Assembly (NCBI GenBank): GCA_977016875.1
Contig: CDRNST010000218.1
Span: 1,178,001 to 1,242,000 of the forward strand
DNA length: 64,000 nucleotides
Reading direction: 5' to 3'
Origin: Pavona decussata
Lineage: Eukaryota
Positions 21,201 to 44,400 of this stretch are shown here, piece after piece. The stretch's first letter is position 1, and every line of letters starts with the position of its first letter. Made by a program: the position numbers and the translations under genes. Under the pieces are notes generated by a model, which saw only the letters and a list, made by a program, of their open reading frames with translations, was not told where the DNA came from and searched no databases.

Positions 21201-21933
21201 ACTTTCGTGGTGAGGTGGAAACGTCCAATTTTTCATCACATGAATCACTTGGCTATAGATATGAATGGAAAATACATTTAATATGGCACAAGAACAAACA
21301 ATAATGCTCAGATAACAACTGAATAACAAACTAACCACTGAAAGTAAATATATCAAACATATACTATGAACTACTACTAACAACTACTACTAGCTATTAA
21401 CATATATGAGTGCCTTCCAAATATGTACCGTATTTCCCAAATAATGTGCCAAATTTAGGCCCTTAAATTATGAAATATATTTAAATTCAGCTGTTGTCAT
21501 AAACACAGATGTGCGTATCAAAGTAGAGTCTATTTAAAAAACTATCACTTACAGCCCCATATAAGTCATTTATTACAAAATTTATACCAAATGAAAACAA
21601 AATAAACCTGGATAAAAATCTTTCTTTAATGAGACCTTTCACCCCATCATTCACCTGGTCTCTTAGGAACTTAACTTAATACACCTTTTGCTGTTCATTT
21701 ACTGAAAATACGCAATCATTTGCACTAAAAGTCAGACAATAATGCAAAAATACGTTCAATTGCACCAATCGGCATTCAATTGTGCGAAATGCACCCTCCA
21801 CGAGGATATCTGCATGATTGTAAACCACGCTGGGGCCAAACCACCCCTCCAATGGGTCTTCGGGAGCCCGCGACTACTTAGGGGTAAATTTCAAGATGGC
21901 GGAAAATTAGAATTCCTCTTCCTAAAATCCAAC

Positions 21934-22570
21934 ATGGCTGCCAAAGTAAACTTCGCTGAAACACTTCGACCTGCTTTGCAACGCGCTAAATCTGACTGCT
22001 AAAGACAAATTTCAAGTGGGGATGGAATCAAAAAAGTGAATGACTTCTTCGAAGAGCTTGATCTTGCTATGGAGTCTTGGATAATAAATTCAGTCAGCGC
22101 TCGAGATAGCAACATCCAGCGGCTGTTGCCCGCACACGGAATGGTGGCCAGAGCCTTAAGAAAGATCCACGCCAAAATTGTACGCCGGCTCAGTTCAAGA
22201 CCGAAACTGGCTAATCCATTGCTTGGAGAGTTCACAATAGACATGCCAGTGGAGGTGTTGTTAGGTATCTCAAAAGATATCCTGGACCGAACAGATTTTG
22301 GCCATGAATTTAGTGAGACGAACACCCAACTGTTTTACAAATCAATGATTTCCGAAAGGCCAGACACTTGTTCAAGAGGATGGACATTGCAATGCTGATG
22401 TAGACCTAGAAAATATCTTTAAAAAGCCACTCAGTTGTGAAATGGAGAGGTGTGAGGTGATTGTTTTGGCTGAGAAGCCACTGGAATTGAAATTTCACAA
22501 GAAAAACGAAGTTCTGACCGTGAAATTTCACTATGGATACTGGAACATGAGTGGTGTACCACAGCACTAG
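21934..22570 (+). pseudogene. ~210-aa protein of unknown function; second gene of the CAC element, convergent with the transposase
   Basis: ATG at 21934 (MAAKVNFAETLR), premature TAA at 22000, in frame with ORF 22036-22398, frameshift near 22345, ending KFHYGYWNMSGVPQH*. Confidence 0.6.
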
Positions 22571-22679
22571 ATAAGTCCTTATTTTGATTCTTAGTGTTTT
22601 TGATATACATTTAATTACAGAAAAAATTTTTTTTATAATACTTGCTTGATATACATTTAATTACACAAGTTTACAAAAT

Positions 22680-22923
22680 GAGTGTGGCCAATGTGCGAGG
22701 CTTGCGAGCCAAACGTGCGAGCCAGGCAAGCCATGCGAACCAAACATGCGAGGCTTGCGAGGCCCGAACATCCCCTAACATAAATGCTAACCATTAAGCT
22801 AACCAGGGAGCTACTTAAGCTAACCTGAGTGCTATTTAGGCTAACCGGAGTGTTTTTAGGCTAACCTCAGTGCCTCGCACATCTGCCTCGCATGGCTCGC
22901 TGGCTCGCAGATTGTCAAGACCC
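22680..22923. mobile_element. MITE with internal CTAACC and GCGAG repeats
   Basis: Imperfect TIRs GAGTGTGGCCAATGTGCGAG / reverse complement GGGTCTTGACAATCTGCGAG. 8-bp TSD TACAAAAT at 22672-22679 and 22924-22931. Confidence 0.75.
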
Positions 22924-23867
22924 TACAAAATTGAGTTAGCAATCTTAGCGTATTAGCTAGCTAGCCATATGGCTTATCAATATTTGTGGGTTCTATTTTT
23001 TGGATAGTATCTACTGAAGTGAAGAACTTATTACAAAAATATACAGACACTGTATTCAAAAATATTAATTAACAACATTGTTTACATTGTTATTGAAAAA
23101 CTGTTGTGTTGGCAGGCAAGTGAAACACTTAACTGGATGGATAGGTTTCCTCACTGCCTGTGGTGGGTGTTCATGACAACAAATCCTAGTTTTAATTAAG
23201 GTTAACTGAAATTGCAAAAAACCTATTATTCAAGGATCTGCTTGAGTTCATTGTTAACTTTTCCAGCAGCAACACTTTGCCTGACTAGCTGCATCACATT
23301 GCATGTGTAAATTGTGCAACCATCGTCATGTACATTTGACTTGGAAAGACCACAATGACAAAATCTGTTATCATGGGCCTTCACCCTCTTGGGGATGTAG
23401 GAGTCACAAGCATTATTTTTTTCTCTTGTCGGTAAGAAACACTGGAGTTGTTCCGCACAAAAACGTTGTGTATGCAAATATCAAACTACTTACGTTGGAC
23501 ATGCAAATAACAATAACAGACGTGAAATGCATATGGGGCGCCGATTGGGACATTATTGTATATTTTAAAAATATATCCTAAACTTACAATTTATGCTAAA
23601 CTTTCGGCGTTATGGAGTGTTCTCAGTATGAACTTTATGCAGAACTCAAGAATTATGGCCAACTTTACTTGTACGGATGTGTGGTAATGTTTTAGTTTGT
23701 CCTAAACTTTTCTTTTGTGGAGCGTTTCAATTTGAATTTATGCCAAACTCGAAATTTATGGTCAACTGAAAATTTATGCTCAACTCAATATTTATGGCAT
23801 GATGCATTGCACGCAAACAACCTGAACGGGAGGGACTGGTGCGGGTGGCCGCCATCTTCAATACAAT

Positions 23868-25388
23868 ATGGCAGCGAGAGTAACACGAAGACCTAACAGT
23901 CTTGCTTCTTTTTTCACTGCTGCAAGGCAACTTGTGTCTGAAGTGGAATCGTACTTTTCGTCTGATGAAGATGGCAACCTTGACAGACTTGAACTACTGG
24001 AAGGTCGTCTGGAAGAGGCCTGTGAGACCCTTTATGTTGTCATTCAGCAATCTGGGGACTTGAGCTCTCAAAACCCAAACAACGCGGAACTGGGTCAGTT
24101 TAACGCTGACATGAATGTTCTTTGCCGTCACTTAAATGTACTTAGAAGCCACTTTGGGGCTCAGGCAGCTGAAGAGGGAGGACGGGATAAAGAACTGTAC
24201 TCGTGCCCTACAGAGAACTCTGGAAATACAGGGAGACCAAGGTACTTAATTTCTGTTCAGCAGCTTCAGTTCCTCAGAGATTTACATTTTTCGTGGACAA
24301 AAATAGGCAAAATTCTTGGGGTGTCAAGAAAAACAATAAATCGAAGGAGACAGGAGCTAGGAATGAGTGAAGAACTTTCCTGGTCTTGCGTATCTGACGA
24401 TGACCTTAAACAAATAATGTGTGAGATACAAACATTAACCCCAGGAATTGGCCAAACAAGGATGCTGGGATCTTTAAGGAGCAGGGGGCTGAAGATTCAA
24501 AGGTGGAGCTTAAGACAATGCTTGCGGGAAATTGACCCTGTTGGCACTGTTCTGAGATGGCGGCAGGTAATTCAGAGACGGAGTTACCACGTAAGATCTC
24601 CAAATTCCCAATGGCATCTTGACAGCAATCAAAAGATGGTAAAATGGAGATTTGTCATCCATGCTGCTATTGACGGGTTTTCAAGAGTTATTTTGTATGT
24701 ATACTGTGCCACAGACAATACGTCAAGGACAGTGCAAAGTTTGTTTGAAGAGGCAGTTAGACAGTATGGTCTACCCTCCAGAGTTAGATGTGACCATGGG
24801 CTAGGAAACGTGGGTGTGGCAACTACAATGCTTCAGATGAGAGGTCTTAATAGAGGAAGTGTCATCACAGGCAGCTCAGTGCGTAATCAGAGAGTTGAAC
24901 GGTTACATCGAGATGTAACCAGTGGAGTCTTGCGTGGGTATATTGAGCAGTTTGAAGAGCTGGAAAGATATGGACTTTTAGACAGTAGCAATGATGTCCA
25001 TTTGTTTGCTCTCCATTTTGTTTACAAAGAAAGAATCAACAGGTCTCTCCAAGAGTTTATTGCTCACTGGAACCATCACAGCCTTAGCACCGGAAAAAAC
25101 CTTTCCCCTCTTCAGCTTTGGAGCCAGGGTGTTCTTCAACAGTCCTTATCCTGCAGTCCAGCAGTACATGGCATCCTGACAGATGACAATACCATTAACG
25201 TTGATGACATGTTGTCATCTGCAGAGAATGATGAAGCTACTGTGGTTGTTCCAAAAACGTTGCTGGGCCTTTCAGATGAAGACATTGATATTTTGCAAGC
25301 TACACTTTCCGGATATGGGGATGACAGTATCAGTGGTTATTTACAAACTGTGAACACTATTTGCCAGCTTCTTAATGTCAACTGCTGA
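23868..25388 (+). CDS. IS3EU integrase-like DDE transposase (506 aa, open frame)
   Basis: GRPR plus HTH ([17 protein letters not shown]), [40 protein letters not shown] and SP.QLW. Confidence 0.9.
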
Positions 25389-25902
25389 TGAAAGCAACTA
25401 AATGAATACTGTACAGTCGTAATTCTGCATGCTTTGGTGAAAAAATGTAGGTGAAACAGTGGGTCATTATGCCTCAGAATGTATGCAGCTTGTATGTAGC
25501 CTGCGAACAAGCCCCTTAGTGGGAAATAGAATGAGTTGAACAGTGAGAAAGGGGAGGCAATACTAAATGAACAATTTTTGACTAATGGATAGACCAAGTC
25601 ATTTATTAATCATTGGTCACTTATGGCTTCACTGATCAGCTATCCACTCCACCCTGTGACTGCAAACCTCACCGCTTACACCCTATTGAGAATATTTTAC
25701 ACACTTACTTTTGGCTTATGCTGTGGTTGATAAATTTTCCCGTTGTTGTGTTGTGATGATTGTTATTCTTTCCGGCACTCATTCAAACAGAATGGTCAGT
25801 TATTTTGTGTCATCTTTTGTGTACATAATTCAGTTCATGTTTGGTTTTGTTAGGAAATAAACATAAACAAAACACATTGGATAAATTTGAGGACTGCGTA
25901 TA

Positions 25903-25999
25903 CCGTATTTACTCGAATAAGCGCCGCGGCGCTTATTTAATTTTTCGTGTCTCTTGTGCGGCGCTTATTCGAGGGCGGCGCTTATTCAAGTACATACGG
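25903..25999. mobile_element. Tc1/mariner/pogo-type MITE
   Basis: TA|CCGTATTTACTCGAATAAGCGCC...GGCGCTTATTCAAGTACATACGG|TA. Confidence 0.8.
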
Positions 26000-27246
26000 T
26001 ACTTGCCATAATTATTTTCTTTCCATTTTTGTATTTAGAGAGACATTTTTCATGGCAGCAACCACTCTGGAATAAACGATAATAAAATATTGCCTGAAGG
26101 TTGCAAGAAATTCTAATTACATGGGCAGTATTGTAGAAGATATGTATTTAACATGTACCCAATGGGTTATCAATGGGTAAACACCTAATGATTAATCAAC
26201 TCATTGATTGCTTACATGTTATGTCTGATTAGAATTTAAAATCTTCCAATGTTTTGGGCTTCATATATGACAAACAATTTTCAATGGTTTTTCTTGACCA
26301 TTTGCCAAACCATGTGCAAATTTACCATGAAACAAACCATGAAGGGATCAAAAGGTGTCTACCCAACCCCACAATGTCAAATTAAGGATCGCATTGGCAA
26401 AGAAGCGAATCGCATTTTAGTTAACAGTCATTGGCTGTTAACTTTGACTTCAGCCTCATTATTGAGCATAAACTGAGCTCAAAATAAAGAGAAAGGGATA
26501 CCTGTCTGTCTCTTCAACTTACATGAAAACATGTAAACACTGCCAATGAAATCAAATCCAGTTTAATTACAAAACACAAACCATGCAAAACCACAAACGC
26601 ATCACAAAACATTCATCGACAGCATGCTTTACATACTATTTGAAAATCTGAACATCTTGAATTCTCACCGCATATTTACAAGAAGACCAATATGCACAAG
26701 ACTCACAGAATAGTGTGCTGTCTCATAAGCAACAACATGCAAATCAAAATTCAGTGAACCTACAGAGTCAAACAGCTGATTGTTCTTAAATCTTAGGCAT
26801 GACAGGCCAAATTCAAATCATTCCAAATGATCATCTACCACTGACAGAAATTTAAAATCAGAGACCCACTGAGTAAATTTTGTCACAGACTTCACACATA
26901 AAATAACTGAAACATTTATTTTATTGTAAATTACAGTGCTACCCACTTGAAATTACAATTTGTAATAAAGAATATGATATCCACTATTAAATCTGTATGT
27001 GCAAATTTTTTATATGACTGTAAACCTGACAATCAGAGGTAACAAACTTAGATAACATGAACAGTAAAGCTTTCAAACAAATTTTAAGACTCAAAAGGTA
27101 TAAATTTTCTCCCTGTGACCACAGTGGAAATGGTCATTTTGTGTCACAAAATGCACCAGGCTTAATCATTTCAGTGTAAGCAGAAAGTTCACAAAAACCT
27201 CTCATACTTGAACAAGAGTAGCATTTGAAAAAGTTGCTAGTATGTT

Positions 27247-30189
27247 TTACATACAATTAAATGACTTTCCACATGTTTTCAAAACTGCCTCAACAGACAA
27301 CTTAAAATGATCTCCATTGACAAACGTTTTTGGCAGTGTAATCTCACACAGACAAGTGGAAGCAAAGATAGATGGTTGCTCAGAAAATTTCACTGATATT
27401 GTCTGCAGACCAAAATATGGGAGGGAAGGAGCACCGGTTACAAAGGTCAGAAACATCTTTAAAGTATCCTGAGAAGAGGCCAATAGAAACTGTCAGAATA
27501 CCATTCACTCTTTTCTCTTCATCATCCCTAGAGGTAGGGAACTTGAGACGGCTAACGACTGCTTCACTTGTAAGAGATGATCCGTTGAAGACAAAAAGTT
27601 CTTCAAAGAGCGCAGGATATTTATTCATTTTCTCTAGAAAGCCCAAACATGACAAACCATCTCTAAGCTGGTCAAGTGCAGTCTTCATTCCTCCAATTGC
27701 GTCATGGAAAAGTATGGCTTGTATTACAGAGGTCTTGTTCTCATTCTACAGAGACAGAGAAAAGGGAACAACAACAAATGCCATAAATAAAACTTAAACA
27801 CATACAAGTTCTCAGTTTTCAACCTCAACAAAGTACCAAGTATAATGCTACAATGCAGTGTTCAGAACTGTATTAGTTACAGCATTCTCATCTTGGAAAC
27901 ATTAATATTATGGCAACAGAATAATTTTACAATTTATTAGAATATAACATACACGGTAACATAACAGTCTATACTACACATCACTGACACAAATGCGTGT
28001 ATGGTAAAACATTAGAAGAAGCTCTTGTAAGCAACCACCTAAAATGCCAGAAAAGTGGTCACCTAGAAGAAGGATCGCTTAAGATAGGTCATAGATATGG
28101 TGATTTGACTGAAAGAAGGCAATTTTGTATCACAGACAAGTGGTCGCTTTACAAGACGTGGTCAGAAAGGGAGGTTCAACTGCAAGTTTAAAACTTTCTG
28201 CCAACCTTTAAGACCATTGTAAGTCCACACTCAGACATAACATTTGTAACAGCTTCCTCCATGGAGATTTCATCAGCATTCTGAGCATTCTGGATCTAAA
28301 CAGACACCAAAGTCCTTAGAAAAGTTCAGAACACTTACGGTTGTAAATGTATCTCAAACAGTCAATGGAAATAGCACTGTGTGAGTTTGCAAAAGTATCA
28401 TTTATAGTATTGGGAGTGAAAAAGAGTGAAAAAGGGTAAACCAGCCTATGGCAGGTCTATTTTGGGGATATGGGGCCTAGGTTGAGAGCAGTTGAGGGTG
28501 CGGCTATGACTCTTCACTCTTCACCCACACCCCTAACTCCCCAGCCCCACAAGCCCCCTCCAAGAAAAGGTCTACCCCTCTTTCCAAATACATAATGATG
28601 GCTTGCTGCTGCAGTACTGCTATGTATTAGCCAAATTACATTTCTGGGCTGTTGGTTTTCATTGGTGTAGAAAATTTGGACTATGCAGTGCTATTCAGTA
28701 AAAGATAAGGGGAATAACTCAAATATTTTCCCTTAACATATGCATAAAAGCTTGTGGGATAAACACACACACACAAACACACCTACCTTAAGCACAACAT
28801 CCTTATAGTTGGGATTTGCACAGTCGTCAAAGCACAATTGCTGTATGGCTGCATCCACGCTCCCTGTCGCAAGGTACCAATATAATGCTGAAGAAAAGAA
28901 TGGGAATCCAGGGCCCCCATACAGCACACTATGAACAATGATTGTGCCAATAATCTTCATTAGCCCTGAAATTAAAATATCAGTGTTGTAGAGAGGAACC
29001 TTTCTGCTCTCTCCTAAAAAATAAGTCACAGATAGCCTATGCAGGAGATCTGAAAAGAAATGACGAGAAACACCACCGGTATCAGAGGCTGGTTGGCCAC
29101 TGTAAACAACTCGCACGCCAGCTTTAGGGTCGAAGTCTGGCCTCTTGTAAAATGCCACAGCATCAGCTACAAGATCTTCTTCATCAACTCGCAGCTTTTT
29201 CCGGTCGAAAGCATCATTCAACTTCCCCTTTAACTTTTCTATCAATAGCTCCAGGCTCATGAGTGGGATCTGTGATTCGAGCTCAGGACTACTACTCCTG
29301 TCTGCAAGGAAGGACGCAGCTTCTTGCAGAGAGTTACTGCAGTCATAAGCAAGTTTCAATTCTTCCTCTTTCGTTTCAGGGAACATCTCCTTTAGTACAA
29401 GGAAGCTTCTCTCTTGATCCATCGCAGAAGCACCAGAAAAAGTGGATGGAAGCCCATCACTATCAGCAACTGTTTGGGGTTCTGTGGTCAGTGGTCGCTC
29501 AGGTGTTTTGACATCCCCCAGATCATCCTCCAATGTGTCCCAGGGGCACCTGTCTAAATCTGAGTCTCCATCAACTTCCTCAGAGTTCTTGTGCAGAACT
29601 TTGTCAGGTCTAAGATAAATACTTCCTTGCCCTGAAATGCTTAGAACTCGTGCTGCATTCATTGTAATCCCATCTGCAACTTTTGGGGGAACAATTTCAC
29701 CATAGCATGCTTCGGCAAATTTGAAATTGGCACACTTAGAAACCAAAATTGCCATGACCTATCGATTGGAAATTCGTGCACCACGATCCCATCATTTTCC
29801 AGCGTTATTCTCGATCGGTGAGTCGGTGAGTATGTTTTCTTCTTTGCCAAAGCGGGTGCCTTAGAACGAGTCCCTTGCTTAGACTTGAACTCTGACTTTC
29901 GTCTTCCTGAATTGCCCGACAATGACGGAAAAGCTTCTCGCAATGACTGCCTCACAGCTTCTCCAGAACGACTGATGCTCGAAGCACGTGCACGCAAGGA
30001 CGCTGCTTGTGGACCTAGTGCGGATGTTCCAGCCGTTTGTTGAGAAGGATTTTCCAATGGGTTGGTTAACTGGTTTTCAATGGTATTTCCATGGCCATTT
30101 ACATTTTCTTCTTATCTTTGCAGCTGAGAAGTCGCCTGGCGAGTGATGTCCGCTAAAGCTTGACGAACATTGCCGCCTTGATCCGCCAT
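27247..30189 (-). pseudogene. Three-exon CUE-like + HECT E3 ubiquitin ligase-like gene carried by the IS3EU
   Basis: Exons 30189-28787, 28295-28206 and 27745-27247, all phase-0 GT-AG. CUE-like LKEMFPE...LQEAASFL. HECT N-lobe VRVVYSGQPASDTGGVSRHFF and IVHSVLYGGPGFPFF. C-lobe FLTFVTG...FASTCLCEITLP. A few stops and frameshifts. Confidence 0.82.
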
Positions 30190-30636
30190 TTTGTATCAAA
30201 GAAGGCGAGTCCAAGATGGCGGCCACCCGCACCAGTCCCTCCCGTTCAGGTTGTTTACGCGCGATGCATCATGCCATAAATATTGAGTTGAGCATAAATT
30301 TTCAGTTGACCATAAATTTCGAGTTTGGCCTAAATTCAAATTGAAACGCTCCTCAAAAGAAAAGTTTAGGACAAACTAAAACATTACCACACATCCGTAC
30401 AAGTAAAGTTGGCCATAATTCTTGAGTTCTGCATAAAGTTCATACTGAGAACACTCCATAACGCCGAAAGTTTAGCATAAATTGTAAGTTTAGGATATAT
30501 TTTTAAAATATACAATAATGTCCCAATCGGCGCCCCATAAATGCACGCAACGCCTCATAATAGCTATTGATTAAACAACTGCTTTCGTGGTTGTTATTTT
30601 GATTTAATTATCAGAGCTGTTTGTTTTTGCAACCTC

Positions 30637-31200
30637 CTAAAGTGATCCCTGAAACAAAGTAATTCTGCACTCTGTTAAAAAGGTACAAACTTCTATTACA
30701 CTTTGCAGCAACCACCTCGGGTGACGCGAGATCGATGATGTACATTTGAAATCTTTTAGTTGTTTGAAAATGTGTTCAACTCTAACGCGCTTTCTCGCAA
30801 GCTCTCTGTTGAACTTTCTTGCCCTACGTCTTTCTCTGTTGTTCCGCATTGCGCGTATTTGTGCTTGACGAAACGGTGTTAGCAAAGGAACATTATCAGG
30901 ATACCCTTTATCAGCTAGGAGCACTACTTCGTTCGGCAAATCTAGCACCTGCCCTGGACCAACAGGTTCCATTAAGTGGAATGTTTGGGAGTCATGCATG
31001 CCTCCAAGAAAGCCTGTCTGTAAAAATCGAATGTGACCTGTGTTGTCACAGATTAGTTGAGTGTTTAATAAATGAAAGTGACTGTGTCCACTATAAAATT
31101 CTCTCTGTGGCTCTGTTGAGGGAATCTGAATTTCATGTGGCGTAACGTCGATGCTTCCTACTGCATCTGGAAATTCTGGCCAATTGTTGCGAAGCGCGTC
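30637..31200 (-). pseudogene. Harbinger (DDE_Tnp_4) transposase C-terminal fragment
   Basis: GMHDS, LLADKGY, LLTP and FNRELARKRVRVEHIFKQLK. Confidence 0.88.
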
Positions 31201-32499
31201 CCATTCTCTCGTGCATTTCTGTTATTGTTATTTGCATGTCCAACATAAGTAGTTTGATATTTGCATACGCAACGCTCTTGTGCAGAACAACTCTACTGAA
31301 AGGATCCATCTCTCTAAGCCACAAGAGACAAACAAATTCATGGCGGAACACAATCCACCACCTCATGCTTTTTTTGACATTGCAAGTGTTTTCAACATAC
31401 TTTGCCTGCTTGACATGCTTGGCCTCTTGACCCTGCATGGAGTTAAGGCCACGTCTAAACCCAAGTTTCTCCAGCAACTGGTCGGTGTGATATGGGATAG
31501 CACATCCCACTGTCCGCACAGTTGGATTCACACCACTTAACAGCAGGCAATTTGCTGTGAAGTACTGCTGGCCCAAGATCTTCAAATGCTCCACTTGCTG
31601 CTTGTTTACATCTACCCTGGAGTAAATGGCAGCAGCATCCCTGATTTTTACACCAGTAAATGCCAATGTGTGCAGTTTCACCACAGACCCACTTGATAGA
31701 TTGTTTATCTTCAGTAGTTCCTGAATAAGGTAAGTGAAGTTCCATGAAAACTTCTTTGATTCCAGTCCAGTGAATCTGTAAGAGAAAGAAATTCCCTTTT
31801 TTCTCTTCTCACTGAACCACCTGTTGGAGCTGTTGCAAAGCCTTCCACACTTTGTAGTTCCCAGCACACAGTTCAGAAATGCTACCAGTGGTGATGTGAT
31901 AGGAAGATCTGACACCACTGTTGCTGTTTTGAGTTTAGCCTGGTCAGTGTACTGCATGGCCACTGTCAGGATGGCTAAAAACCACTGCTGCCAGGCATGG
32001 AGGGGCTCCGTCTTAACCAAATCCACATATTTGCCCAGTTGGGGAACAAATTCTTGCCTAGATTTTTGCTCAGCAATGAACTTGGTGACCTCTGCTCTTT
32101 GTTTCCCCCCAGGATCTTTAAGTTTAGCTTTAACCTTCTCAACTTTCTCTGCAACCTCACTTCTCTTCTTGTAATTCCATGGTTGCCAAGTTTCTATAGG
32201 TCCACCAATTGAGCCACCAATGGTCAATTTGTTAGTCTGGTTCACATTGGCAAAGGGTGAAAAGTAAACAGCACAGTTATTAAGTTCTCCAGACATGGAT
32301 GAAACCCATTTCATGTCACTTGGGATTAGCTGAAATCTAAATTCAACTACCGTCGTTTTCATCTAAGCGTGGACACGTGATAGAAAAACATGTTCTAATT
32401 GGGTGCAAACATGACATGCTTGGTAACAAAACATTTGAAGTTTTACAGCCGGTAAGCAAACTTTCGCGCCAAGGTTTGAAAGTTTACAAATTTGTTAAT

Positions 32500-33540
32500 A
32501 TGTTTTCGATAAACAAATACGGCTGCAACTTCAAACCAGGCATTCCTCTGTCCAAGGATTTCAGAAATGACGTGATTCAGATGGCGGCTATGCGTCCAAT
32601 AAGCGAAATATTTAGAAGGTATCGTATAAATTGTTCAACTGTCCACAAGTACACTAAACAATATCGCGAAACAGGCAATATTGACCCACTTTCAAGAAAG
32701 CACATCAGAACACCAAGCAAACTGTCGTTCGGTGATTCCATGTTATTGGAGATGATTGTCCGAAGTAAGGGATCCACCTCTCTAAATGAAATTGGAATTG
32801 GGTAACTTTGGTGATTGCGGTGAGCTGTCACTTTCTACCCTGTCAAAACATGTTCGCAAAAACCTATCAAGCGGTAAAGACTACTTGCCTAAGCACTTAG
32901 GAAAGTGCGCCGGTGAAAGGTTCACGCATGAAAACCTTGTCTACACACAGCTGTTCTTAGATTACTTGTGCAATAAAGATCCCTCTTCCGTTAAGTTTTT
33001 TGATGAAAGCGGATTTCAACTGCCGGATAGTGGACACCGAGTCTATGGTTACTCTCCTGTGGGCGAGCAGTGTTTTGATGTGGGATGCTATTTATCAACC
33101 GCGAATATTACTCTCAACTTTCTAGCCGGTGTTGATGGATTGAAGTACGCAAATATTGTTCGAGGTGCGTCAAATTCGATTGAATTTTTGAGATTTTTCT
33201 CCGAAGCATCTCAAACAGTTGATCCTAATACCTCAAGACCAGTTTTGGAAGTTGGAGACATTATAGTGGTGGACAATTTTGCCGCCCATCACGGTGATGC
33301 CGAAGTAGCTCTTCGCAGTTTTTTAAGTGATGTGGGAATGGAACTCTTGTTTTTGCAAGCTTATTCTCCTGACCTCAACCCTGACGAGGAAGTTTTTTCA
33401 AAGCTGAAATACCTCTTGAAATACCAATATCAAGATCTATTGTGTTTGAAAATTTGGAATATGCTGTATGGTGTCCGGTCGGTGATCTAGAAGCTACTGA
33501 CATGCACGGATATTACCGCCACACTGGATATTTGATTTGA
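32500..33540 (+). pseudogene. DD37E transposase with paired-like HTH N-terminus
   Basis: FFDESGF, VVDNFAAHH and AYSPDLNPDE, with 37 residues between D2 and E. Frameshifts near 32790 and 33440. Confidence 0.88.
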
Positions 33541-34157
33541 TTGACAAGAAGCGGACAAACTCTGTTGTTGTAACTTTGAGAGTTACCTTGAATACTGAGT
33601 TGCTGTTGTTGCTGCGTATTTTTCAATTTTCAGAGTCGTCACACTCTCTCTAATTCATTCTGTTATCGTTCTCGTGAACAAATCAGTTCACCATGTCAGC
33701 AAGCGTGAAGCGTGACCCTGTAAACAACAAACGAGTTCATAATGACAAATTAAAAAAATGTATTTGTTGCGTAGATTAGTCTCCTCTTTATTTAATTACA
33801 TCAGAACCGCTACTGAAGTAACCACATGATAGGACTGAAGCAAAGAAAGGTAATCACTGAGGGAATGAACATGTAACATGCTAACTCAACGACAAAATCT
33901 TCTTAAGTAACCTCACCGAGGCTGCCAGTCTCAGTTTTGTTTTGCCACTTCACTGAAGACTTGAAATACCATAAACTATCGACTGAAGGTTTTTTTCTTT
34001 CATGAACTTTTTTTTTTCCTCTTTTAAGTTAAAACTCAACGTTAAAGTGTAACAAACAAGTGGTGCCACGGAGTCTATTACGTTTGAAAAAATTATGAAC
34101 TTCTCAAAATGTTGCCCATATGCATAAGTTCATACTGGAAAATAACCGGAGAAAAAA

Positions 34158-35469
34158 CTAAACTAAACGATTACTTTGAAGAGCCCAGCTGATATATTTC
34201 AAATGTTTGTTGCAATTCAGTGTTCTGACTTCTTTCGACTGAGAGATAACAATAGTTGCGGCCTCCTCGCTGCTGTTTGTCTGACTTGTAGTTCCATTCG
34301 CGCATACCTCCTGACTGTAAGGCTCATCGACTAAGGACAATTTCATGGGCATTTAAAATTGCTCTTCTTCCTCTTCCTCTGAATTAGGAGTAAGTAAGCT
34401 TACTGGAGATCTTTTGCCCTTCTTATCAGGAAACTGGATTCCGTAAGATGTGTTTGGATTCCATTGGAGAACACGGGTTTGGTTGTTTTCGCGCGCTTGA
34501 CCTTTGCGCAGTCAACCCAAGAGGATCTTGGTATTTCTTTTCAACGATAGATTTAACAATTTCACGTGAAGGCAATGTACCTAACTTGAAATTCTTGTTA
34601 ATGAAAGCCACATCTTGCTGAATTTTCAGCCAATTGCGAATGCCATTTTCCTTATACTAATCGGGGAATTCTTCCATCAGAATATCCTCGAAGTTTTTGT
34701 TTACAGAATTGGTGACACTAGAAAACGCAGCCTGTCGGGCAGTTAACTCTTGGGAAATCTTTTTAACGGACGTTTCCAAAGTCGCAATAACGCATCTCTT
34801 CTCCTGGAAAACCAATTTCTCATCGGGGTGTTTGGACAGGTCACCACAAAGGAATGAAGATTCACATTTTTTTTCCACACATGATCTAACTGTGTGATTC
34901 TTTTGATGACAGTTTGAACACCTTTGGCCAGCGCGGCCAATTACTGAGGCAGCTCCCTTTATTCGATCAAGCATGGTTTCTACCTCTCCTTTCTTTCGCT
35001 TTGTTTCTTCATTTTTGGCTTTCAGTTCATCTTCTTTGCTCTGAATGTACCATTCATCAGGAGGCAACAAACCAAATTTGTGAGGCTTAGAAATTTTGGT
35101 CTGAGTTCTGGAAGACAATGGCTGGCATGGATCGCTTTCGTCGAATGCGCTTGCCTGAAATTCCACAGAAATGTCTCCTTGAATTAAGACTGCTTTTTCT
35201 TAAGTTTTCATCAACCTTGCCTTCTACCAGTATGAAAGATCGATTCTCTCCCGACTTCAGTTTAGGAGTACGTATTTTAGTTACATATTCAGGATAAGCC
35301 GTCGATGTCCTTCTGGAACTTCCACTCCTAAGTTTTGAAAATCCTGTTCGCGCCAATACTTCATCATTACACTTGACGAGGACCCACATTTACGGAAAGC
35401 GGAAGCATACCTCAACAGATCTGGATCAATTTCCTCGAAGAAGTCTTCGATATCCATTCTTTCTGCCAT
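34158..35469 (-). pseudogene. SAM-like domain + zinc knuckle + coiled-coil protein (accessory gene of the DD37E element)
   Basis: LLRYASAFRK...EQDFQNLGVEVPEGHRRLIL (SAM-like) and CSNCHQKNHTVRSC...C...C...H. Colinear broken ORFs from 35469 to 34158. Confidence 0.6.
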
Positions 35470-37297
35470 TTTGGAAAACGTGGTCAAAAACCCTTCAAAC
35501 TTCAAATGTTTGGCAGCCAAACATGTCATGTTTACACCCAATTAGAACATGTTTTTCTGTCAGGTGTCCACGCTTAGATGAAAACGACGGTACATGGCCT
35601 TGATCAGTTTTTAACGTAGCCCCTTCCATGAGCTCCATTTCTTCGACCAAGTGCTTTGTATACTGCTTCATTAGTGGAGTATCTTCAGCACAAGTAGCAC
35701 CCATAAGAAGGTGGTTGTCATTGCAGCTCTGCACCTTATGTAGAAGGTTCAGAATGCTGACAAGGTATGCTATGAATGAAAACAAAAACATTTCATCAAA
35801 CAAAATAAAATATAATTTAAAAGGTGGCAAATTATTCACAGTATTGAATACTATCACAATTTTTCTGATTAGGAAATAGATAATAATATTATAATGATCA
35901 TAAGTAATTATTTAAATATTTTACAGAGCTCAAATGTTTTAATTAATAACATAAATATTTGACATTAAAATACAAAAAAACATTTCATTCAAATGTGTGT
36001 TTTACTGTGAAACTTAATGAAAACTGTGTCACCAGAAATATTTATGTAATGTTATAGTGTTACAATTAGGATAAAGCCAATCAGGGGTGAGAAAACTGAA
36101 CCGTAAACAGCAACAGTAATTAGTTGTGATTTCGAGGTTGGCTTGCATGTCCTGAGAATTCATGTAATAGGTCACTGCACAATCAGCATTCCTGAAACAT
36201 TTCGGGTGTTCATGGTTTTCTGAGTTTAACAGTTGAGTAACATCATCTTGTCTTACCACTAAATTAGTGATACAATATCTGTCTATGGTAGTATCCGAAG
36301 ATAATAATTTACCTGTTGCTGTATCATCCTTCCCAAAGGGAGCACCACCTGCACCAATTGCTACGTGCAAAACTCCTTTTTCTCCATTGAACCAGTGTAG
36401 GCATGGGGTTTTGCTGTCCAGAAACAAGAACAGATCTGCAAGCCTCAGCAAAAAAGGCTTCAATGGCCTGTAAACACCAGACGTTGATTCCATTGAATAT
36501 TTACTGGGCAGATTATCCAAGGATAACACTTCACCAATTTCCATGCTTCTGACAAAGCACATGAGTGTTTTGCAGGACAAAATTGTTGGAACTTCGCATC
36601 CTGTCATAAATTCTGTCTTCATGTTTTTCTTTTTCTTTTCAGTTTCTCCCACAACATCTGAACTGTTCCTAATGCTTGTGTACTTTCTCTTGCTTATGAG
36701 GCCTCCTTCATAAAGTACACGCAAGCTTCTCACTTTATTATCCTTTGCGTGTTCATAATTCTCCAATTAAACGAGACTTACCTGTAAGTTGAAGTTTGAT
36801 TTGGATTCTATCTTGTCATCAGTCCGGAACGAAGGAGTAACATGAGAAGCACGCGCGCTAGCTTACTGAGCCATTATTTAAAGAAAAGGATTGTTGGAGA
36901 TCACAGGAACGAAGGAGTAGGGATGGGTAAATTCCAAAGGGAGGGCATGTTACTCCTTCGTTCCGGACTGATGACAAGATAGAATCCAAATCAAACTTCA
37001 ACTTACAGGTAAGTCTCGTTTAATTGGAGAATTCTATCTGTCATCAGTCCCACGTCACTATGGAGTACCATGAGAGTTCAAAGCCTGTGAGCTCCAACAT
37101 GACCATGAGACGTACCAAAAATAAGTCGGGTACGTGGTCTAAAAAGGAGGATGTGGCGTGTCATACAAGAGAAAAAGCAACTGGAGTTTAATTAAGTCAA
37201 TCAAGACATTGCGAGACAAATGTGTCGACAAGCGAGATTATGTAATAACAAAAGATAATTGGTAAATGGAACAACGACAAGAAAACATTTCCGTTTT

Positions 37298-38300
37298 CTA
37301 GTTAGTCTGTGTAACAGAGTCAAAATGAGTCAGAAGAGTTTGACCCAGGTTGCCGCTAATAGGCTTGTTATAGTGTTCAGCGAATGTTCGAGCGTTCGCC
37401 CATCCCCCAGCCTTGAGAATGTCCACTAGAGGAAGTTGTGCGTTGGCGCTGTAAGAGGTGGAGGCTGTTCGACTACTATGTGCTGAGAATATGCTGACGT
37501 TGATTCCAGCATCCTTGAGCGTTGATTTAATCCATCGAGCAACAGTAGAGTTGGTGATGGGCTTGTGCCATTTCGTATAACTAATCAGGAGGCATGAGTC
37601 GCTGCAAAGCAAGTGCATTTTCGTGATGTAATGTTTTATGTGGGTTACCAGGCAAAGACGGCTGTCTTGGGAGAATGATCGGATTTCAATGGGCGCAAGG
37701 TGTTTGCCAGGTGGAGTTGTTTTCAGGGTGTCCCGTATCGTAAAGATAATTCCGGTCGTGGTTTCCTGCATACATGAGGTGTCCAGTTTGGAGAGTGTTT
37801 GAGTTCGCTGTGCCGTGACAAGAGCAAGTAACATTGTAAGATTCCGTGTAAGTTGTTTTAATGTCAAGTCGTTAAGGGCCTGAAATGATCAGAGATAAGA
37901 TAGGACAGTGCCAACGTCCCATATAGTGGAGTACCTGGGCAGAGATGGGCTAAGTTCAAAAGTTCCTTTGAGAAACGCAATACCAGGGGATGTTCTCTGA
38001 AAGTGGTCTTATCAGCGGGTGTTACAACCGAGGACAAAGCGGATTGTGCAGTGTTGATAGCACTGTAACCGACGCCTTGTTTGTAAAGTAAGTGAGAAAA
38101 TCCAGACCGTCGTTAATGGTGGCATGGGCGACGTCCAATTGTTTGTTTTTGCAATAGGTCACCCATCGAGAGAGGTAGGTTGTGTACTGTTTCCCGGTGG
38201 ATTTTCTCCAAGAGGCCATGAGGATGTCTATGGTATCAGGGGATAAACCTAGCTTTTGTAATTGCTCCCGGACAAGTGGCATACTAGCAGCGTCAGGTTC
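37298..38300 (-). pseudogene. DIRS tyrosine recombinase
   Basis: ASWRKSTGKQY, LLALVTAQR, HSSRTAS and GW...TFAEHYNKP. Confidence 0.9.
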
Positions 38301-38317
38301 TTGTGAAGTGGATGTAG

Positions 38318-40214
38318 TTACTCGGGTTTCCCGGGTAGTTGAAGGAGGTGCTTGGCTGGATGGAGTGTAATCGGTGGCTCCACGCACATCTGCATGGCTT
38401 GGGGAAACCAAGCTTGTGTCGGCCAATTGGGCATGATAAGAATTCCTGATGCTCGGTCCTCCCGCACTTGCTGAAGAAATGCGCTGATTACACTGAATGG
38501 GGGAAAAGCATAGAATTTAAGATAGCGTAAGTTCAGTGAAAAAGCATCAACAGCAACTGCGCCTGGGTCAGGCTTAAACGATACATATTGAGGAAATTGA
38601 TTATTTAGTCGTGAGGCGATAAGGTCTATATTCGGGCGCAAGCTTAGTTTCAACGGTGCATTGTTTAGGGAGTCACTATCAAGCATCCATTCCGTGTTAT
38701 TGTTGATTCGTCTTGATTCGAAATCAGCCCTGATATTGCGAACCCCGGGGATGTGAGCAGCACTGAGCCATATGTTTTGTTCGATGCACCATTCCCAAAT
38801 TTCTTTCCCTAAATGGTTGCAAGGGTCTGAATGGCTAGTCCCCATGTGGTTTAGGACTGCTATTGTAGTTGTTATCAGTCAGAATTCGAAGGTGGGTGTT
38901 GTAATGTGTTTTACAAAAAGTTTGTAGGCCCTTGAACACTGCTAATAATTCGAGGTAGTTTATGTGATGCGATTTTTCCTCATCGGACCAAAACTCTCTA
39001 GTGCTTGTGTCATTGTAAACCGCCCCCCATCCACGCTGGGATGCGTCGGCGGTGAGGATGTTTGAGGGCTGTCCATGGGTTATGACATTATGGGAACTCA
39101 CGATGTTGTCCACCCACCACTGGAGTTCCCTTTTGCAACCTCCCGTTAAGGACATCAAACTGTCAAAAATGCCTTTGGCGGATTTTAGAGCTACGGTTTT
39201 AGTGTGTTCAAGGACTCTATAATGAAGTTGTCCATACATGACCCCAGGGAATGATGAGATAAGTTTTCGTATCACACAGACTACTTGTCGTATTGTCGGA
39301 AGGCCTTGTCCCAGAAGGGTGGCACAAGCTTCTTTAACTTTCAAGGCCTTTTCAGGGGTCAATGTGATAGTCATGGCAACTGAGTCGATAATAAAACCCA
39401 ATACAACCAAGCGTTGGGATGGGATAAACACAGATTTGTCTGGATGGATTGTAAACCCCAACAAATCAAATTGAATAAAGGTGTCAATCACGTTAGAGAC
39501 ACAAACATTGTATGTTCTCCCTCGGAGGTAAAGGTCATCGATGTAACTAGCTGATATGTGACCCTTTTTGTGTAACTCGGTAAGCGGCGGTTATAGCAAT
39601 TTTGTGAATTTCCTGGGGCAAGAAGATAACCCGTTGGGTAGGCACGTGAACTGATACAAAACATTTTTCCATAAGAAACGTAGGTATTTCCTATGCGAGG
39701 GATTCACGCCAACCGTATAATAAGCATCCTTGAGGTCTAGTGAGGCCATATAGCAATTTTATTCTACTAATCGCACTATTGACTGAAGTGTCTCCATTTT
39801 AAAATGGTGATAAGTGACCAATTTGTTTAATCCCTTGAGGTTTAGAATTAGTCTGTGGCCTCCATCTTTCTTAGGTCTAATAAAAATGTTGGAGATCACC
39901 TCATAAGGAGCATGAACTGTTGTTTCAATAATGTTTTTAGACAGCAGTTTTGCAACTTCACTGTCGATAATACCACTTTCTTCAACAGAGAAAGTAGATA
40001 GTGGGCGTTTAGTGTTCTACGGTAGGGTGTCAAATTCAATCGTTGCCCCTCTGACGGACGTCAGAATTTCCTTATCAGAGGTAATCATCTGCCAGTTGCT
40101 AATGTACTTGGTTATGCAACCGGCTCTAAAATAAGTGCATCTATTGTGCAAATATTCCTTGACATCACGTACCAAAGAGGGGAATTCACTTACCGATTTT
40201 CTAATGTTTTCCAA
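38318..40214 (-). pseudogene. DIRS pol: RT, RNase H and methyltransferase-like domain
   Basis: LDLKDAYY, LPNG, YIDD, ADAS..GWG, HINYLEL, ILTDN, IDL.ASRLN, DAF and YAFPPF. Confidence 0.9.
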
Positions 40215-40222
40215 AGATTGTA

Positions 40223-41405
40223 TTATGTCCTCGCAGTTCGGTTCTTGGAGAAGGTGGGTTTTTTCTGGCCCTTCCCCGAAAAAGGCTGCTTGTTCTCTCC
40301 AGCCCTGTAGTATCTGCCATTGTTCTTTTGTGGCTTGCGCTTATCATGATGGGAATTGTATGGGCGCGAAAAACGTGTCGCACCAGTTTTGCTTACGCCT
40401 ATGTCTCCCAATTTTGTTTGTATCTTTGGCATCACATACTTGATTTGCTAAGTCGGCCCCAAATAGCAGATCGGAACGACTGCTCGACCCGTTTGCCTGG
40501 GTGCAAAGCGAATGAAATTCGGGTTTAAGGGCTAGTTTAATCTGTTCTCGGCGTAAGCGGGAAAGTTCCCCAACAGCGTGTCCTAAGAGGGCAATGGCGT
40601 CCACGTTAGCAGCCAGTGTTTCCTTATCTGTGGTCGGTTGCTGAGTCATTAATATTATTTATCACATACTTTGAGAATGCCAAAGGTTGCTTTCTGTAAG
40701 ACTTTTATGTTGCTGACTGTCAGGTCGGCTTTGCGCCTAAAATTATTCAGTTGTTCCCAGATTTCTGGGTTGACTCTTAACATGGTTATGTCGGAGCAAT
40801 TTTCTGGTTTAACGTGTTTAGCCTGCAGTGGTTTTAGTTTGTCGCTGGGGAGGGTAATGCCCCAGCGTTTGGACGCTATGTAAGCCAAGCGTTGGTTTAT
40901 TTTGGCGCCAACAAGTTCATCGTCAATGAAGTCAGCCTCGAGAGACTTGAGAAGCCTGGCTTTGTCTTTGGCCGGCTCGACAGCTATTTTAGCTATCACC
41001 TCGACCTCTTTGGTGTTCCACTCCGCAAGGAGTTCAGTGATGTCTGCATCCGAGGGCGAAAGACTTAATTCGTCATCCTCGCGCCTTCATTTACTCCCGG
41101 TTTTACTTGACCTCTCGTGGTCGTTGTCTTCAGACTCAGAGTCGGTGCCTGAAAGGTCGTTGAGGCCATGCCGCCGTTTCTTTTCCCGCTTTGAGTCTTG
41201 GCGCACAACAATCGTTTGTAATAGAGAGGCCATTGTACCCATATTTACACTGATGTCGGAAAGCGTTTTTCGCTAGTGTTTCGCCAGGTTGGCTGTTAGA
41301 TGAACCTGTTTCAGCAGGGCGAGCAATCTCATGTTGAGAATTATTGCCATGTTGGCTGTCTGTTGGTTGGCTATTAGGGGCAAGTTCACCGTTGTCAGCT
41401 GACAT
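40223..41405 (-). pseudogene. DIRS ORF1 (gag-like)
   Basis: Colinear ORFs with PENC, VNPEIW, DAIALLGHA, RREQIK and LFG, located upstream of pol. Confidence 0.75.
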
Positions 41406-44400
41406 GATAATAATGTGACTAAGAGGTTACGGCAAAGCCTATGGATATAGTAAAAGGGCAAAGAAAATAAGAACAAATAGTTCATGGTTGCTTTTGTCGA
41501 ATATACTCACCACTAGGGTTCCGTTATGTTGGCTCTGAAAGCGAGCGTACAATGGCCCAATAAGCTAGCGCGCGTGCTTCTCATGGTACTCCGTAGTGAC
41601 GTAGGACTGATGACAGATAGAATCTGTAATTTTGCCTTTGATAATACTTGGAATTATTTCTTGCATGCAAATATTTGAGTTCTTAATATAAGTGGTCATC
41701 TCAGGTTTTGATGCCGTGCATGTTAATGTCGTCCACATACCATCAAGCACCGGTTTGTTTTCTCTGGGCAATTTTACCTTGGCTTGAGCACAAGACTTAG
41801 TATGGATGGGACCAAGTGCAGCTAGTGTCTTCTTTCTCCGTGGGAAGAACTGCTTCCTAGAAAGATTAAGCTTTTCACTGTTGGCTGTATGGATTTCACT
41901 TGAGATAGTGGCCCCTCTGTCATCATGTTTTTTTTCTTTTTGGCCTGATCACCACCATCATGATCATCCTCTACATTTTCCAATTCAGCAAGCTGTGTAT
42001 AAATAATTATGAAATTAATTCAAGCAAAATTATAGACAAATGGTTCAAAAGTAAAAATAAATATGAAAAGTAAGTATAATTGAAAAGGTAACCACAAGTA
42101 CTGTGTCAAGTCTGTAGATAAGATCATAGCCTCAACTCTCCTTACCTGAAGAGGTAAACAATGAGACTCCAAATTCAATGAGACAATAAATTTACACTTA
42201 GTTTGTTTTTAATTTGTCACCGAATCACTATACAAAGTCTATGATCTGTTAGTTTCATATAATTCAAGGGGGAACTTGGGCGTATTTGAATTGTTGACTC
42301 ATGCAATCAAAATGTTAAGCTTACTGAAAAATGATCTTATGATCACTATCACGTAGTCACAAGCTAGCAGCGATGATAAATAAAATGAAATGAACAATTA
42401 CCTTTTGCTTTCCTCTTCGAATACGTTCTTCAGTTTTATGAAGTTTCGACTTCAGAGCTTCAAGTTCTGTCGTTTTCTCAAGTAGTTGTGACCTCAGACT
42501 GCTTATTTTGGCATCACATTCAATTAAAGCTTGTGTTCTCTCTTTCCTTAGGCGGTTGTATTTGGCAAGCGGGAAGCGTTGTCTTCGGCCACTCGGGCCT
42601 AACCTAAAGGGACCCATAGATTTTTTTTTTCATTGGGATAAATACCATAAATATGTACATATTTAATAAGAATAGACATCGAAGAAACTTCATATGACTT
42701 TCGATTTTAATAAAAGTTTTTACATTAAGAGAAAATCATAATAGGACAGCACCACCTTGAACACTCTTCAGCTGAATATTCTGTTACAGTTTTGACTCCA
42801 ATCATAGTCAATTTCCCTGTAAAGTTTTCAATAAAATAGCCTCAATGTATATCAACAGAAAGCTACTGAACTGGAGAATCTGAAAAAAGGCGCCTTACTC
42901 GCTTGTATTGTACCCAGGCTACAAAATGTTCGGTTGAAACCGACCGGTTTTGCCTAAGGTCCATATTCTTGAACGCCCAGAAGCCTTTGCGCACTCACAT
43001 ACCGCCATCTTGAAAATGAAAGCCCACGCGCTGATGACCCATTAAAGGGGTGGTCTGGCCCCGATGTGAACATTCAATTAAGTCCCAAGACTTTCATTAA
43101 CGTCTTGCGAAATTCAAATTCGTCAAAGCAACTTTCATTTGCGTGCATTGTAAATTCAATAACATCAAAAGAAAGTTCTTTTGCGCGATCAGACATTTAT
43201 TTTAGTGAACAATATATTCAATAAAATTTTAAACCATGGCTAAACAGTCAATAGCATCAATGAACAACCAATACAATTTTGTTGATAATAGAGTTTCCCT
43301 GAACCCTAAAATAGGGACCTCGAAAAAAAATAGGGGGTGGGGAAAAGTATTCATGCCTCTATGAGTAACACATTTTCTGAAAGAATGGGATCCAGTTGAC
43401 ATTTCAAACTCTTACAACTCCTCCTATAAAGTGCACTAAGTTAATGTACCTCAATGCTCTGAGGGAAGCTGCTACTCTCTGCACAAGTGTTAGGCGCCTC
43501 ATCTTCACTCAATACTATTACATTAGTGGCTCTATAGATTAGAAATAACATCTCCATGAGAACTTGTATGGCCTATCGCAGCAATAGTGCCTATTACTTA
43601 AATTAATTTGCAAACTTTCCATGCACAGAAAATAAAGTTACCCTCACCTAACCCTTTATTGTGCATACTTACTGTGCAGAATATTGTGCATAATTAATTT
43701 TTTTGGAAAGGAAGAAAGAAATACCGAACACAGTGCACAAAATTGTTACTTGTGGAAGCAAATCATGACCTTGAAAATAATGACTCGAGTTTTTTGACAA
43801 GTATAATGTAAATAAACTTTGCTTTCAGCTACTGCAAAATATAACAGAAGTGATCAAATGACGCCCGTGGTTAGCCTTATTACAGACATAAATGGAGTAA
43901 GATTGGTTTTTGAGACCACCCCCACCCCCCTTGAAATTGCCAATGACCTATGGATATTACCTCTTTGCATGATTTTGTTGACTTTTTGATATTAAATAAA
44001 GACCACAATCTTAATGCCTCTTTTAAATGGTAACTAAATGAGGCAGCTACCCCACCTTTTTTGATCTCTCTCATCTAACAACACACTGAGCTGGTGAACA
44101 ACATCATTATGTTCACTCCTATCATCATCTACAAAAAATTTCACAACTGCCATAAGAATAAATGTCTCCTTTTTTGTGTATCACAATACATCACAATAAG
44201 TCAGTAGCATATAAAACGATTTTCTTGTGTGTTTTAGTTGGTGCATAATAATTATTTACAATAAGACTGACTCATTTCAACATGGTAAAGGTGGACAAAA
44301 AAAGCCACCACATTATGTTTTGAAGAAAATAATCGTTTATGATATCACATCCGATATCCCACAAATTCTTAGGTAATTTTCAAACAGTTTATGCATTAGT

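Follow-up and report, generated by a model that had tools for sequence, protein, structure and literature searches.

RAG1 needs RAG2, and ProtoRAG shows that this pair arose from one transposon. The EnSpm/Mirage/Chapaev/Transib (CMCT) clade of DNA transposons is defined by 5'-CA..TG-3' termini, a target-site duplication (TSD) of 2–5 bp, a DDE triad, and two motifs preceding the Glu, namely C(2)C, which follows the second Asp, and H(3-4)H, a short distance from the Glu (PMC12730594). Three-base-pair TSDs combined with CAC..GTG termini are the signature of EnSpm (PMC12730594, PMC4079192), Chapaev3 integrates at TWA sites, between A and T, its motifs being C(2)C, LH and H(4)H (PMC4079192), and Chapaev, first described from amphioxus and sea anemones, carries an N-terminal Chapa zinc finger (PMC4411706). 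In addition, a Nozomi/Hopper-type Transib lineage of Drosophila has a RAG1 fold that is missed by InterProScan and TSDs of variable length, including 3 bp (bioRxiv 10.64898/2026.08.26.747230). Here, we analyzed a stretch of 64,000 nucleotides from Pavona decussata (assembly GCA_977016875.1, contig CDRNST010000218.1, forward strand positions 1,178,001–1,242,000), referred to as the window and numbered from its first letter. Window positions 21826–43068 very probably represent a fossil cut-and-paste DNA transposon, which encoded a transposase with a RAG1 fold and, convergently, a partner protein of the DUF8238 family.

Once four nested inserts are taken out, region 21826–43068 condenses to a single element of 5,030 bp. 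Its left end reads CACGCTGGGGCCAAACCACCCC; the left terminal inverted repeat (TIR; 21826–21858, plus strand) begins CACGCTGGGG. The right TIR (43036–43068, minus strand) ends ..CCCCGATGTG and, reverse-complemented from 43068, reads CACATCGGGGCCAGACCACCCC, giving tips of CACGCTG...CGATGTG. By eye, the TIRs agree at 27 of 33 positions, the six mismatches being transitions throughout, as befits an old copy; repeat finding in the window returned 30-nt inverted arms at 21832–21861 and 43033–43062 (87%). An AAC trinucleotide lies directly outside either terminus (21823–21825 and 43069–43071), forming a 3-bp TSD. Each of the four inserts could be identified from its own terminal repeats, target duplication and hallmarks. 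Insert 1 (22680–22931) comprises a miniature inverted-repeat transposable element of ~244 bp together with a single copy of its 8-bp TACAAAAT duplication; insert 2 (23444–31297) is of Harbinger type, with 81-nt TIRs and a DDE_Tnp_4 domain; insert 3 (32350–35592) is of Tc1/IS630 type, with 96-nt TIRs, a TA duplication, DDE_3 and a PAX-type helix-turn-helix; insert 4 (36759–41622) is a DIRS-like retroelement with Phage_integrase (tyrosine recombinase), RT_RNaseH and inverted terminal repeats. A first-pass annotation of the sequence had proposed exactly such an element, about 5 kb long, hidden by being spread over 21 kb by four nested inserts and delimited by 33-bp CAC-type TIRs and an AAC TSD, and the analysis bears this out.

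The transposase gene was traced with a hidden Markov model (HMM) built from 39 intact relatives (alignment A1) and run on the six-frame translation of the window; all searches used single window pieces or intact relatives, the sole join being a local frame check of RNA-supported exons in a young subfamily (L014, see below). The HMM maps to five colinear minus-strand pieces in strict order. Piece 1 (41623–41992) contains the conserved ..PVLDGMW.. (profile positions 14–108 at 41933–41625), piece 2 (36313–36758) contains GVYRPL and GAGGAP (108–264 at 36763–36299), and piece 3 (35593–35769) covers profile positions 259–317 (at 35773–35597). Piece 4 (31298–32349; 317–680 at 32353–31265; 433 bits, i-E 1.8e-130) holds the second catalytic Asp (SDMKW), EPLH, FTGLES, the invariant His and the catalytic Glu (MQGQEAKH), and piece 5 (23229–23443; 673–732 at 23420–23232) the stop codon as well as a CxC...CxxC zinc finger at the C-terminus. 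Of the four breaks, those at profile positions 108, 317 and ~677 coincide with insert borders. The fourth, at ~260, is a clean GT..AG intron (36312–35770, minus strand), read from the sequence and located within the RNase H core of the window copy's subfamily; its removal restores ..DDTAT/AYLVSILN.., including the conserved ATAYLVS, and the intron-less Actinia gene reads ..DECATAYLVSFLN.. Further upstream on the minus strand, a coiled-coil exon (MGPFRLGPSGRR...RIRRGKQK; 42402–42617), similar to an upstream exon transcribed in L014, would be joined to piece 1 across a putative 5' intron (41993–42401; GT at 42401–42400, AG at 41994–41993), modeled on the 5' introns for which the young subfamily has RNA support.

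In the family alignment, D247, D330, H440, H607 and E628 are invariant (numbering of the intact relative L010), as is a C-terminal CxC..CxxC pattern. The minus-strand transposase that the first reading of the window had described as spliced is present, with every one of its listed motifs (GVYRPL, GAGGAP, SDMK, EPLH, FTG.ES and the rest), and the proposed order DG / D.K / LH / H / E matches the five invariant residues. The window copy itself is dead: its first catalytic Asp has been replaced by Gly (GAGGAP versus the family-invariant GADGAP), an A-run near 41933–41945 causes a frameshift in the transposase, the partner gene carries a stop codon and a frameshift, and four insertions interrupt the element.

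Structural comparison places the transposase with RAG1, BbRAGL and Transib. An AlphaFold2 (AF2) model of a 733-aa relative (predicted local distance difference test [pLDDT] 91.4, predicted template modeling score [pTM] 0.84) shows a RAG1-type three-dimensional architecture. In Foldseek searches, the top 49 matches were all RAG1, BbRAGL or HzTransib, all with E ≤ 0.004, 46 of them with E ≤ 0.001 and the best with 3.5e-12; the fiftieth was noise (E 0.16). Residues 111–670 of the model superimpose on residues 460–1005 of mouse RAG1 with a root-mean-square deviation of 4.1 Å over 476 residues (VIA-align 23.6), spanning the dimerization/DNA-binding, pre-RNase H, RNase H, zinc-region and C-terminal modules. 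VIA-align gave 20.5 for BbRAGL and 19.0 for HzTransib, versus 7.2 and 6.2 for the unrelated DDE transposases ISCth4 and Hermes. Independently of Foldseek, a language-model search returned clusters carrying RAG1_RNase_H as neighbors. The transposase has an RNase H fold bearing a DDE triad, and a large insertion precedes the Glu: in the model, D247 lies at the end of β1, D330 just after β4 and E628 on helix 625–637, with H607 in the helix preceding this catalytic helix. Counting from the aligned ends, D247 falls near RAG1 D600, H607 near H942 and E628 near E962. Of the profile or structural match to RAG1, Transib or Chapaev on which the initial proposal had been staked, the structural half was thus obtained by Foldseek and VIA-align, while the profile half failed, the Pfam RAG1 model giving no match.

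The partner gene (21934–22570, plus strand) points toward the transposase and is a pseudogene in the window, with a premature TAA at 22000–22002 and a frameshift near 22380–22400. A partner profile (A2) nevertheless matches with its positions 60–115 at 22138–22305 and 165–203 at 22451–22567, and the C-terminus, ..KFHYGYWNMSGVPQH, agrees with that of relatives. Precomputed annotation assigns PF26709 to 33 of 35 partner homologs, and the gene neighboring a transposase of the nemertean Lineus longissimus carries the same family, there named DUF8238; our literature searches found no paper on PF26709/DUF8238. In the genome, the A2 search yielded 97 partner matches. Manual comparison with the transposase matches shows no fewer than 50 loci, on different contigs, at which the partner is encoded on the opposite strand, 1–2.5 kb 3' of the transposase. 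An AF2 model of the partner (pLDDT 81) consists of three N-terminal helices followed by a small α/β domain, which has no match above noise in the PDB or ESM Atlas and is not a kelch propeller. A tail-to-tail partner of ~210 aa on the plus strand, of non-kelch type, had been part of the original proposal; both features hold, the convergent arrangement recurring also in Actinia tenebrosa and Lineus longissimus.

Less decayed relatives occur in the same genome. A 350-aa transposase piece found 117 matches in the 602-Mb assembly, many with open frames of 630–790 aa. The young subfamily L014 is represented by six 5.8-kb copies that are 99% identical, with ends CACGCCGGGTCAG...CTGACCCGGCGTG and tips CACGCCGGG...CCCGGCGTG in all six; it encodes a main transposase open reading frame (ORF) of 701 aa and a convergent ORF of 205 aa, and both frames are intact. 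Another subfamily, L010/L019, has a single-exon transposase of 733 aa and a convergent ORF of 219 aa. Four runs, drawn from at least three studies and whose type, not on record, was taken as RNA by guess, supplied Logan contigs that were aligned to the 5.8-kb element. Contig joints with GT..AG ends were found at 3292–3374, 3534–3782 and 3840–4544 (L014 coordinates), the exon after the last joint extending from 4545 to ~7047, and separate contigs cover the partner up to the right end of the element. The presence of spliced joints suggests that the runs contain RNA. We therefore argue, from these young-subfamily contigs, that the family is transcribed and spliced in its 5' region; with six 99%-identical copies and spliced mRNA, sister subfamilies look recently active.

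Outside Pavona, an Actinia tenebrosa copy of 6,021 bp has 35-nt TIRs with the same CACGCTGGG terminus as the window copy (tips CACGCTGGG...CCCAGCGTG) and a CCT duplication, and encodes a 715-aa transposase and, convergently, a partner of 225 aa, which confirms TIR, TSD and gene linkage in another cnidarian. The TSD is 3 bp in all eight insertions examined, i.e. in the six young copies (ATA, AGG, TTT, ATT, AAC, GAA), the window copy and Actinia, as the first-pass annotation had supposed from the window alone. Family termini can be summarized as CACGCYGGG...CCCRGCGTG, with 3-bp duplications lacking sequence preference and two convergent genes, for a DDE transposase of ~700 aa and a DUF8238 protein of ~210 aa. 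Members were found in the anthozoans Actinia, Paramuricea, Oculina, Porites and Acropora and, outside Anthozoa, in Lineus (Nemertea) and Branchiostoma (Cephalochordata). The Lineus transposase gene has a convergent 207-aa DUF8238 neighbor; neither the Lineus nor the Branchiostoma copies showed evident CAC-type inverted repeats in their surroundings. Altogether, among 50%-identity representatives the transposase profile detects 3,246 with E ≤ 0.001, of which 683 reach E ≤ 1e-30; the named members are all uncharacterized or mislabeled.

These elements might be an ordinary, already catalogued family of EnSpm/CACTA or Chapaev type, the second gene being the animal equivalent of a CACTA accessory ORF; we regard this as a serious contender, albeit on balance a doubtful one. 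The family resembles EnSpm/CACTA in its 3-bp duplications without strong sequence preference and CAC...GTG termini, the published EnSpm signature (PMC12730594, PMC4079192), in the long insertion separating the second Asp from the Glu, in a [DE]P[ML]HN motif (EPLHN here, DPMHN in the EnSpm transposases of this genome), and in bearing a second gene, as EnSpm/CACTA elements often do and as canonical EnSpm copies in Pavona do as well. The CA..TG termini of the CMCT clade are present in the window copy, the six young copies and Actinia, and the 3-bp duplications lie within the clade's range of 2–5 bp. However, the ends are CACGC rather than CACTA, common only in CAC, and the second gene of this family, a convergently oriented DUF8238 member, bears no relation to TnpA. 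Moreover, Transposase_21 (PF02992) matched none of the 39 family members at E ≤ 10, as opposed to 63 bona fide matches of the same model in the genome. An hhalign comparison with nine EnSpm transposases of this genome was not significant (probability 1.5–1.7%, P 0.03), although in its best, likewise non-significant stretch D247 is aligned to D299 and D330 to D390, which speaks for an EnSpm affiliation.

The zinc-binding motifs, too, argue against an EnSpm or Chapaev assignment. Between D330 and E628, the family alignment contains no conserved C(2)C; C579 (87%) is the only cysteine column to reach 60% conservation, and it is not part of a CxxC. The only invariant histidines in this interval are H440, of the LH motif, and H607, a second His four residues on being found in L014 alone, so that no H(3-4)H precedes the Glu. 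The EnSpm alignment of this genome, in contrast, has C409xxC412 and H623xxxH627. With Chapaev and Chapaev3, the family shares CAC..GTG termini, 3–4-bp duplications, the LH motif and its occurrence in cnidarians and amphioxus, amphioxus and sea anemones being the animals from which Chapaev was first described (PMC4411706). Unlike Chapaev3, it does not duplicate TWA (ATA, AGG, TTT, ATT, AAC, GAA, AAC and CCT were observed), and it lacks C(2)C and H(4)H as well as a RING; Chapaev has, in addition, been described with one gene. The first 110 alignment positions, helical in the model, contain no conserved cysteines and no conserved Cys/His cluster, which argues against a Chapa-like zinc finger, if indirectly, as the Chapa profile was not searched.

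Transib, ProtoRAG and RAG1–RAG2 share with the family the fold over ~480 residues, the CAC tips and D, D, E at matching places, and ProtoRAG and RAG also the two convergent genes. They differ in duplicating 5 bp instead of the 3 bp seen throughout here, and in their heptamer-spacer-nonamer and ZnC2 cysteines, both absent from the family. Matches to RAG1-core profiles (PF12940 or the newer PF26100 set) are lacking, with none from PF12940 at E ≤ 10 and a blank precomputed Pfam annotation for 120 homologs. The partner in ProtoRAG and RAG is a RAG2-like kelch propeller, here a protein of ~210 aa with a helical and an α/β part. Nozomi/Hopper-type elements, in turn, give 100% in HHpred to HzTransib and RAG1, group with Transib in a tree and have one gene, and the termini of their 3-bp members start with G. 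Lanisha was considered as a relative and set aside as a moss lineage of no relevance. By the sequence hallmarks testable here, the family would thus appear to lie outside EnSpm, Chapaev3 and Transib proper. We infer that the family forms a divergent branch within the CACTA/Mirage/Chapaev/Transib clade, one in which the canonical C2H2 zinc site has been lost. That it represents a separate, metazoan-wide lineage of superfamily rank, devoid of the C2H2 module, with DUF8238 as an obligate second subunit and active in corals, is a bolder proposal that we consider unlikely; if true, RAG2 would no longer be the only obligate partner of a RAG1-type enzyme, a second pairing having arisen independently.

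Several observations weigh against a RAG1-type transposon with a functional partner. Sequence searches did not find RAG1: Pfam returned nothing relevant for the window pieces and intact relatives, its RAG1 model (PF12940) matched none of the 39 members at E ≤ 10, single-sequence phmmer and profile hmmsearch against PDB sequences yielded neither RAG1 nor Transib, and precomputed Pfam annotation is blank for all 120 homologs listed, although that annotation includes the recent PF26709. (Against the whole genome, the Pfam RAG1 model gave one weak fragment of 88 residues, too short for a Transib profile.) The predicted equivalence of the triad to D600, D708 and E962 is derived from conservation, secondary structure and offset arithmetic rather than from a residue alignment. 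To our knowledge, solved structures do not exist for CACTA, Chapaev or Mirage transposases, and the fold match therefore points to membership in the wider RAG1/Transib/CMC clade and not to special closeness to RAG1. A prediction of the transposase–partner complex (score 0.00) gave no verdict on binding, and no partner was seen within 7 kb of the one Branchiostoma locus examined. Lastly, in L014 (3375–4766) the upstream coiled-coil ORF, encoded by exons 2–4, is out of frame with the main ORF within exon 4. Possible causes of this mismatch are a frameshift common to the copies, a splice variant that went unseen, and recoding. Also in L014, the first ATG of the main frame comes only after the conserved IHGG..PALDG motif.

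Because the position of the partner is conserved, we suggest that the DUF8238 protein may be an accessory subunit or end-binding factor that is needed for, or regulates, transposition, a proposal to which we give an even chance. A transposition regulator or inhibitor, or a hitch-hiking passenger with a selfish or host-directed function, has a lesser though still appreciable chance of being the correct description. It would be in line with the lack of any fold or family match hinting at DNA binding or catalysis, a complex prediction that gave neither an interface nor a verdict, the absence of subterminal repeat arrays to bind in the young element, and the Branchiostoma copy, beside which no partner was seen and whose transposase has a SAP domain. 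Passengers, however, are seldom kept for so long: the convergent position persists in subfamilies that are 39–45% identical in their transposases, at the 50 or more loci counted above, and across Cnidaria and Nemertea, the partner frames are intact in young copies, and RNA contigs cover the partner region. That the RAG1 resemblance merely reflects a generic RNase H/DDE fold, the RAG1-like label being over-read, is very improbable, since despite an identity of only 8–12% in the superpositions and no HMM-level match, the 476-residue match runs across the RAG1 modules, 49 of 49 Foldseek matches at E ≤ 0.004 are RAG1, RAGL or Transib, and the independent language-model search leads to RAG1_RNase_H clusters.

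For the fossil transposon and its living relatives, transposition can be pictured by analogy with RAG and Transib: the transposase would pair two CAC ends and nick them, the element might be released via hairpins on the flanking DNA, and integration would take place with a 3-bp stagger. A conserved convergent partner of quite different fold alongside a RAG1-fold transposase offers a comparison for why RAG1-type enzymes need a second subunit. As a comparison system, the young, 99%-identical and spliced copies with intact frames lend themselves to bench experiments, in particular on whether the partner is needed, on whether cleavage proceeds via hairpins and on what sets a 3-bp versus a 5-bp stagger. 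In addition, annotation as transposase becomes possible for ~3,200 uncharacterized protein clusters (a few of them mislabeled as chorismate mutase or NTP pyrophosphatase), and annotation as a transposon-borne accessory gene for DUF8238.

Additional observations concern the relatives. Transposases of Branchiostoma belcheri (P0330) and B. floridae x B. japonicum (P0336), and one from ENA (P0334), are 880–1,050 aa long and carry a C-terminal DNA-binding domain of SAP type. Transposases of Porites harrisoni and Acropora cervicornis fall within one 90%-identity cluster (P0016), although these corals are distant, which could reflect horizontal transfer among stony corals. In the L010/L019 subfamily, 183 nt of the 5' coding region of the partner are repeated in inverted orientation near the other end (1774–1956 and 6772–6954 of L019; 93% complementary), and the same fragment was found again at three other loci; the right tip of the L019 copy is without the final CGTG. 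About 30 copies (L044–L049, i.e. G000:C152:423500-433000 and five others) retain only the last ~180 transposase residues (profile positions 554–733) together with an intact partner frame of 235–251 aa, and have no CACGCYGGG termini. Deletion derivatives were considered for these copies and the idea was dropped, as 96–99% identity over the entire 9.5 kb examined places them inside a larger repeat. The canonical EnSpm elements of the genome (L033–L036; Transposase_21-positive, 946–998 aa) have a second ORF of 296–379 aa that is arranged head-to-head, not tail-to-tail (e.g. 2085–4985 minus and 6272–7330 plus in L034).

The window holds further features beyond the transposon itself. A minus-strand ORF at 28736–29755 (340 aa) in the nested region has no Pfam match. 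Insert 2 contains another element (23532–30539) with 327-nt TIRs that are 98% alike, an AATGCA duplication and an integrase-core protein of 506 aa (rva_4 integrase), and nesting thereby reaches three levels. An intact ORF of 401 aa (19902–21107, minus strand) adjoins the left end of the transposon from outside.

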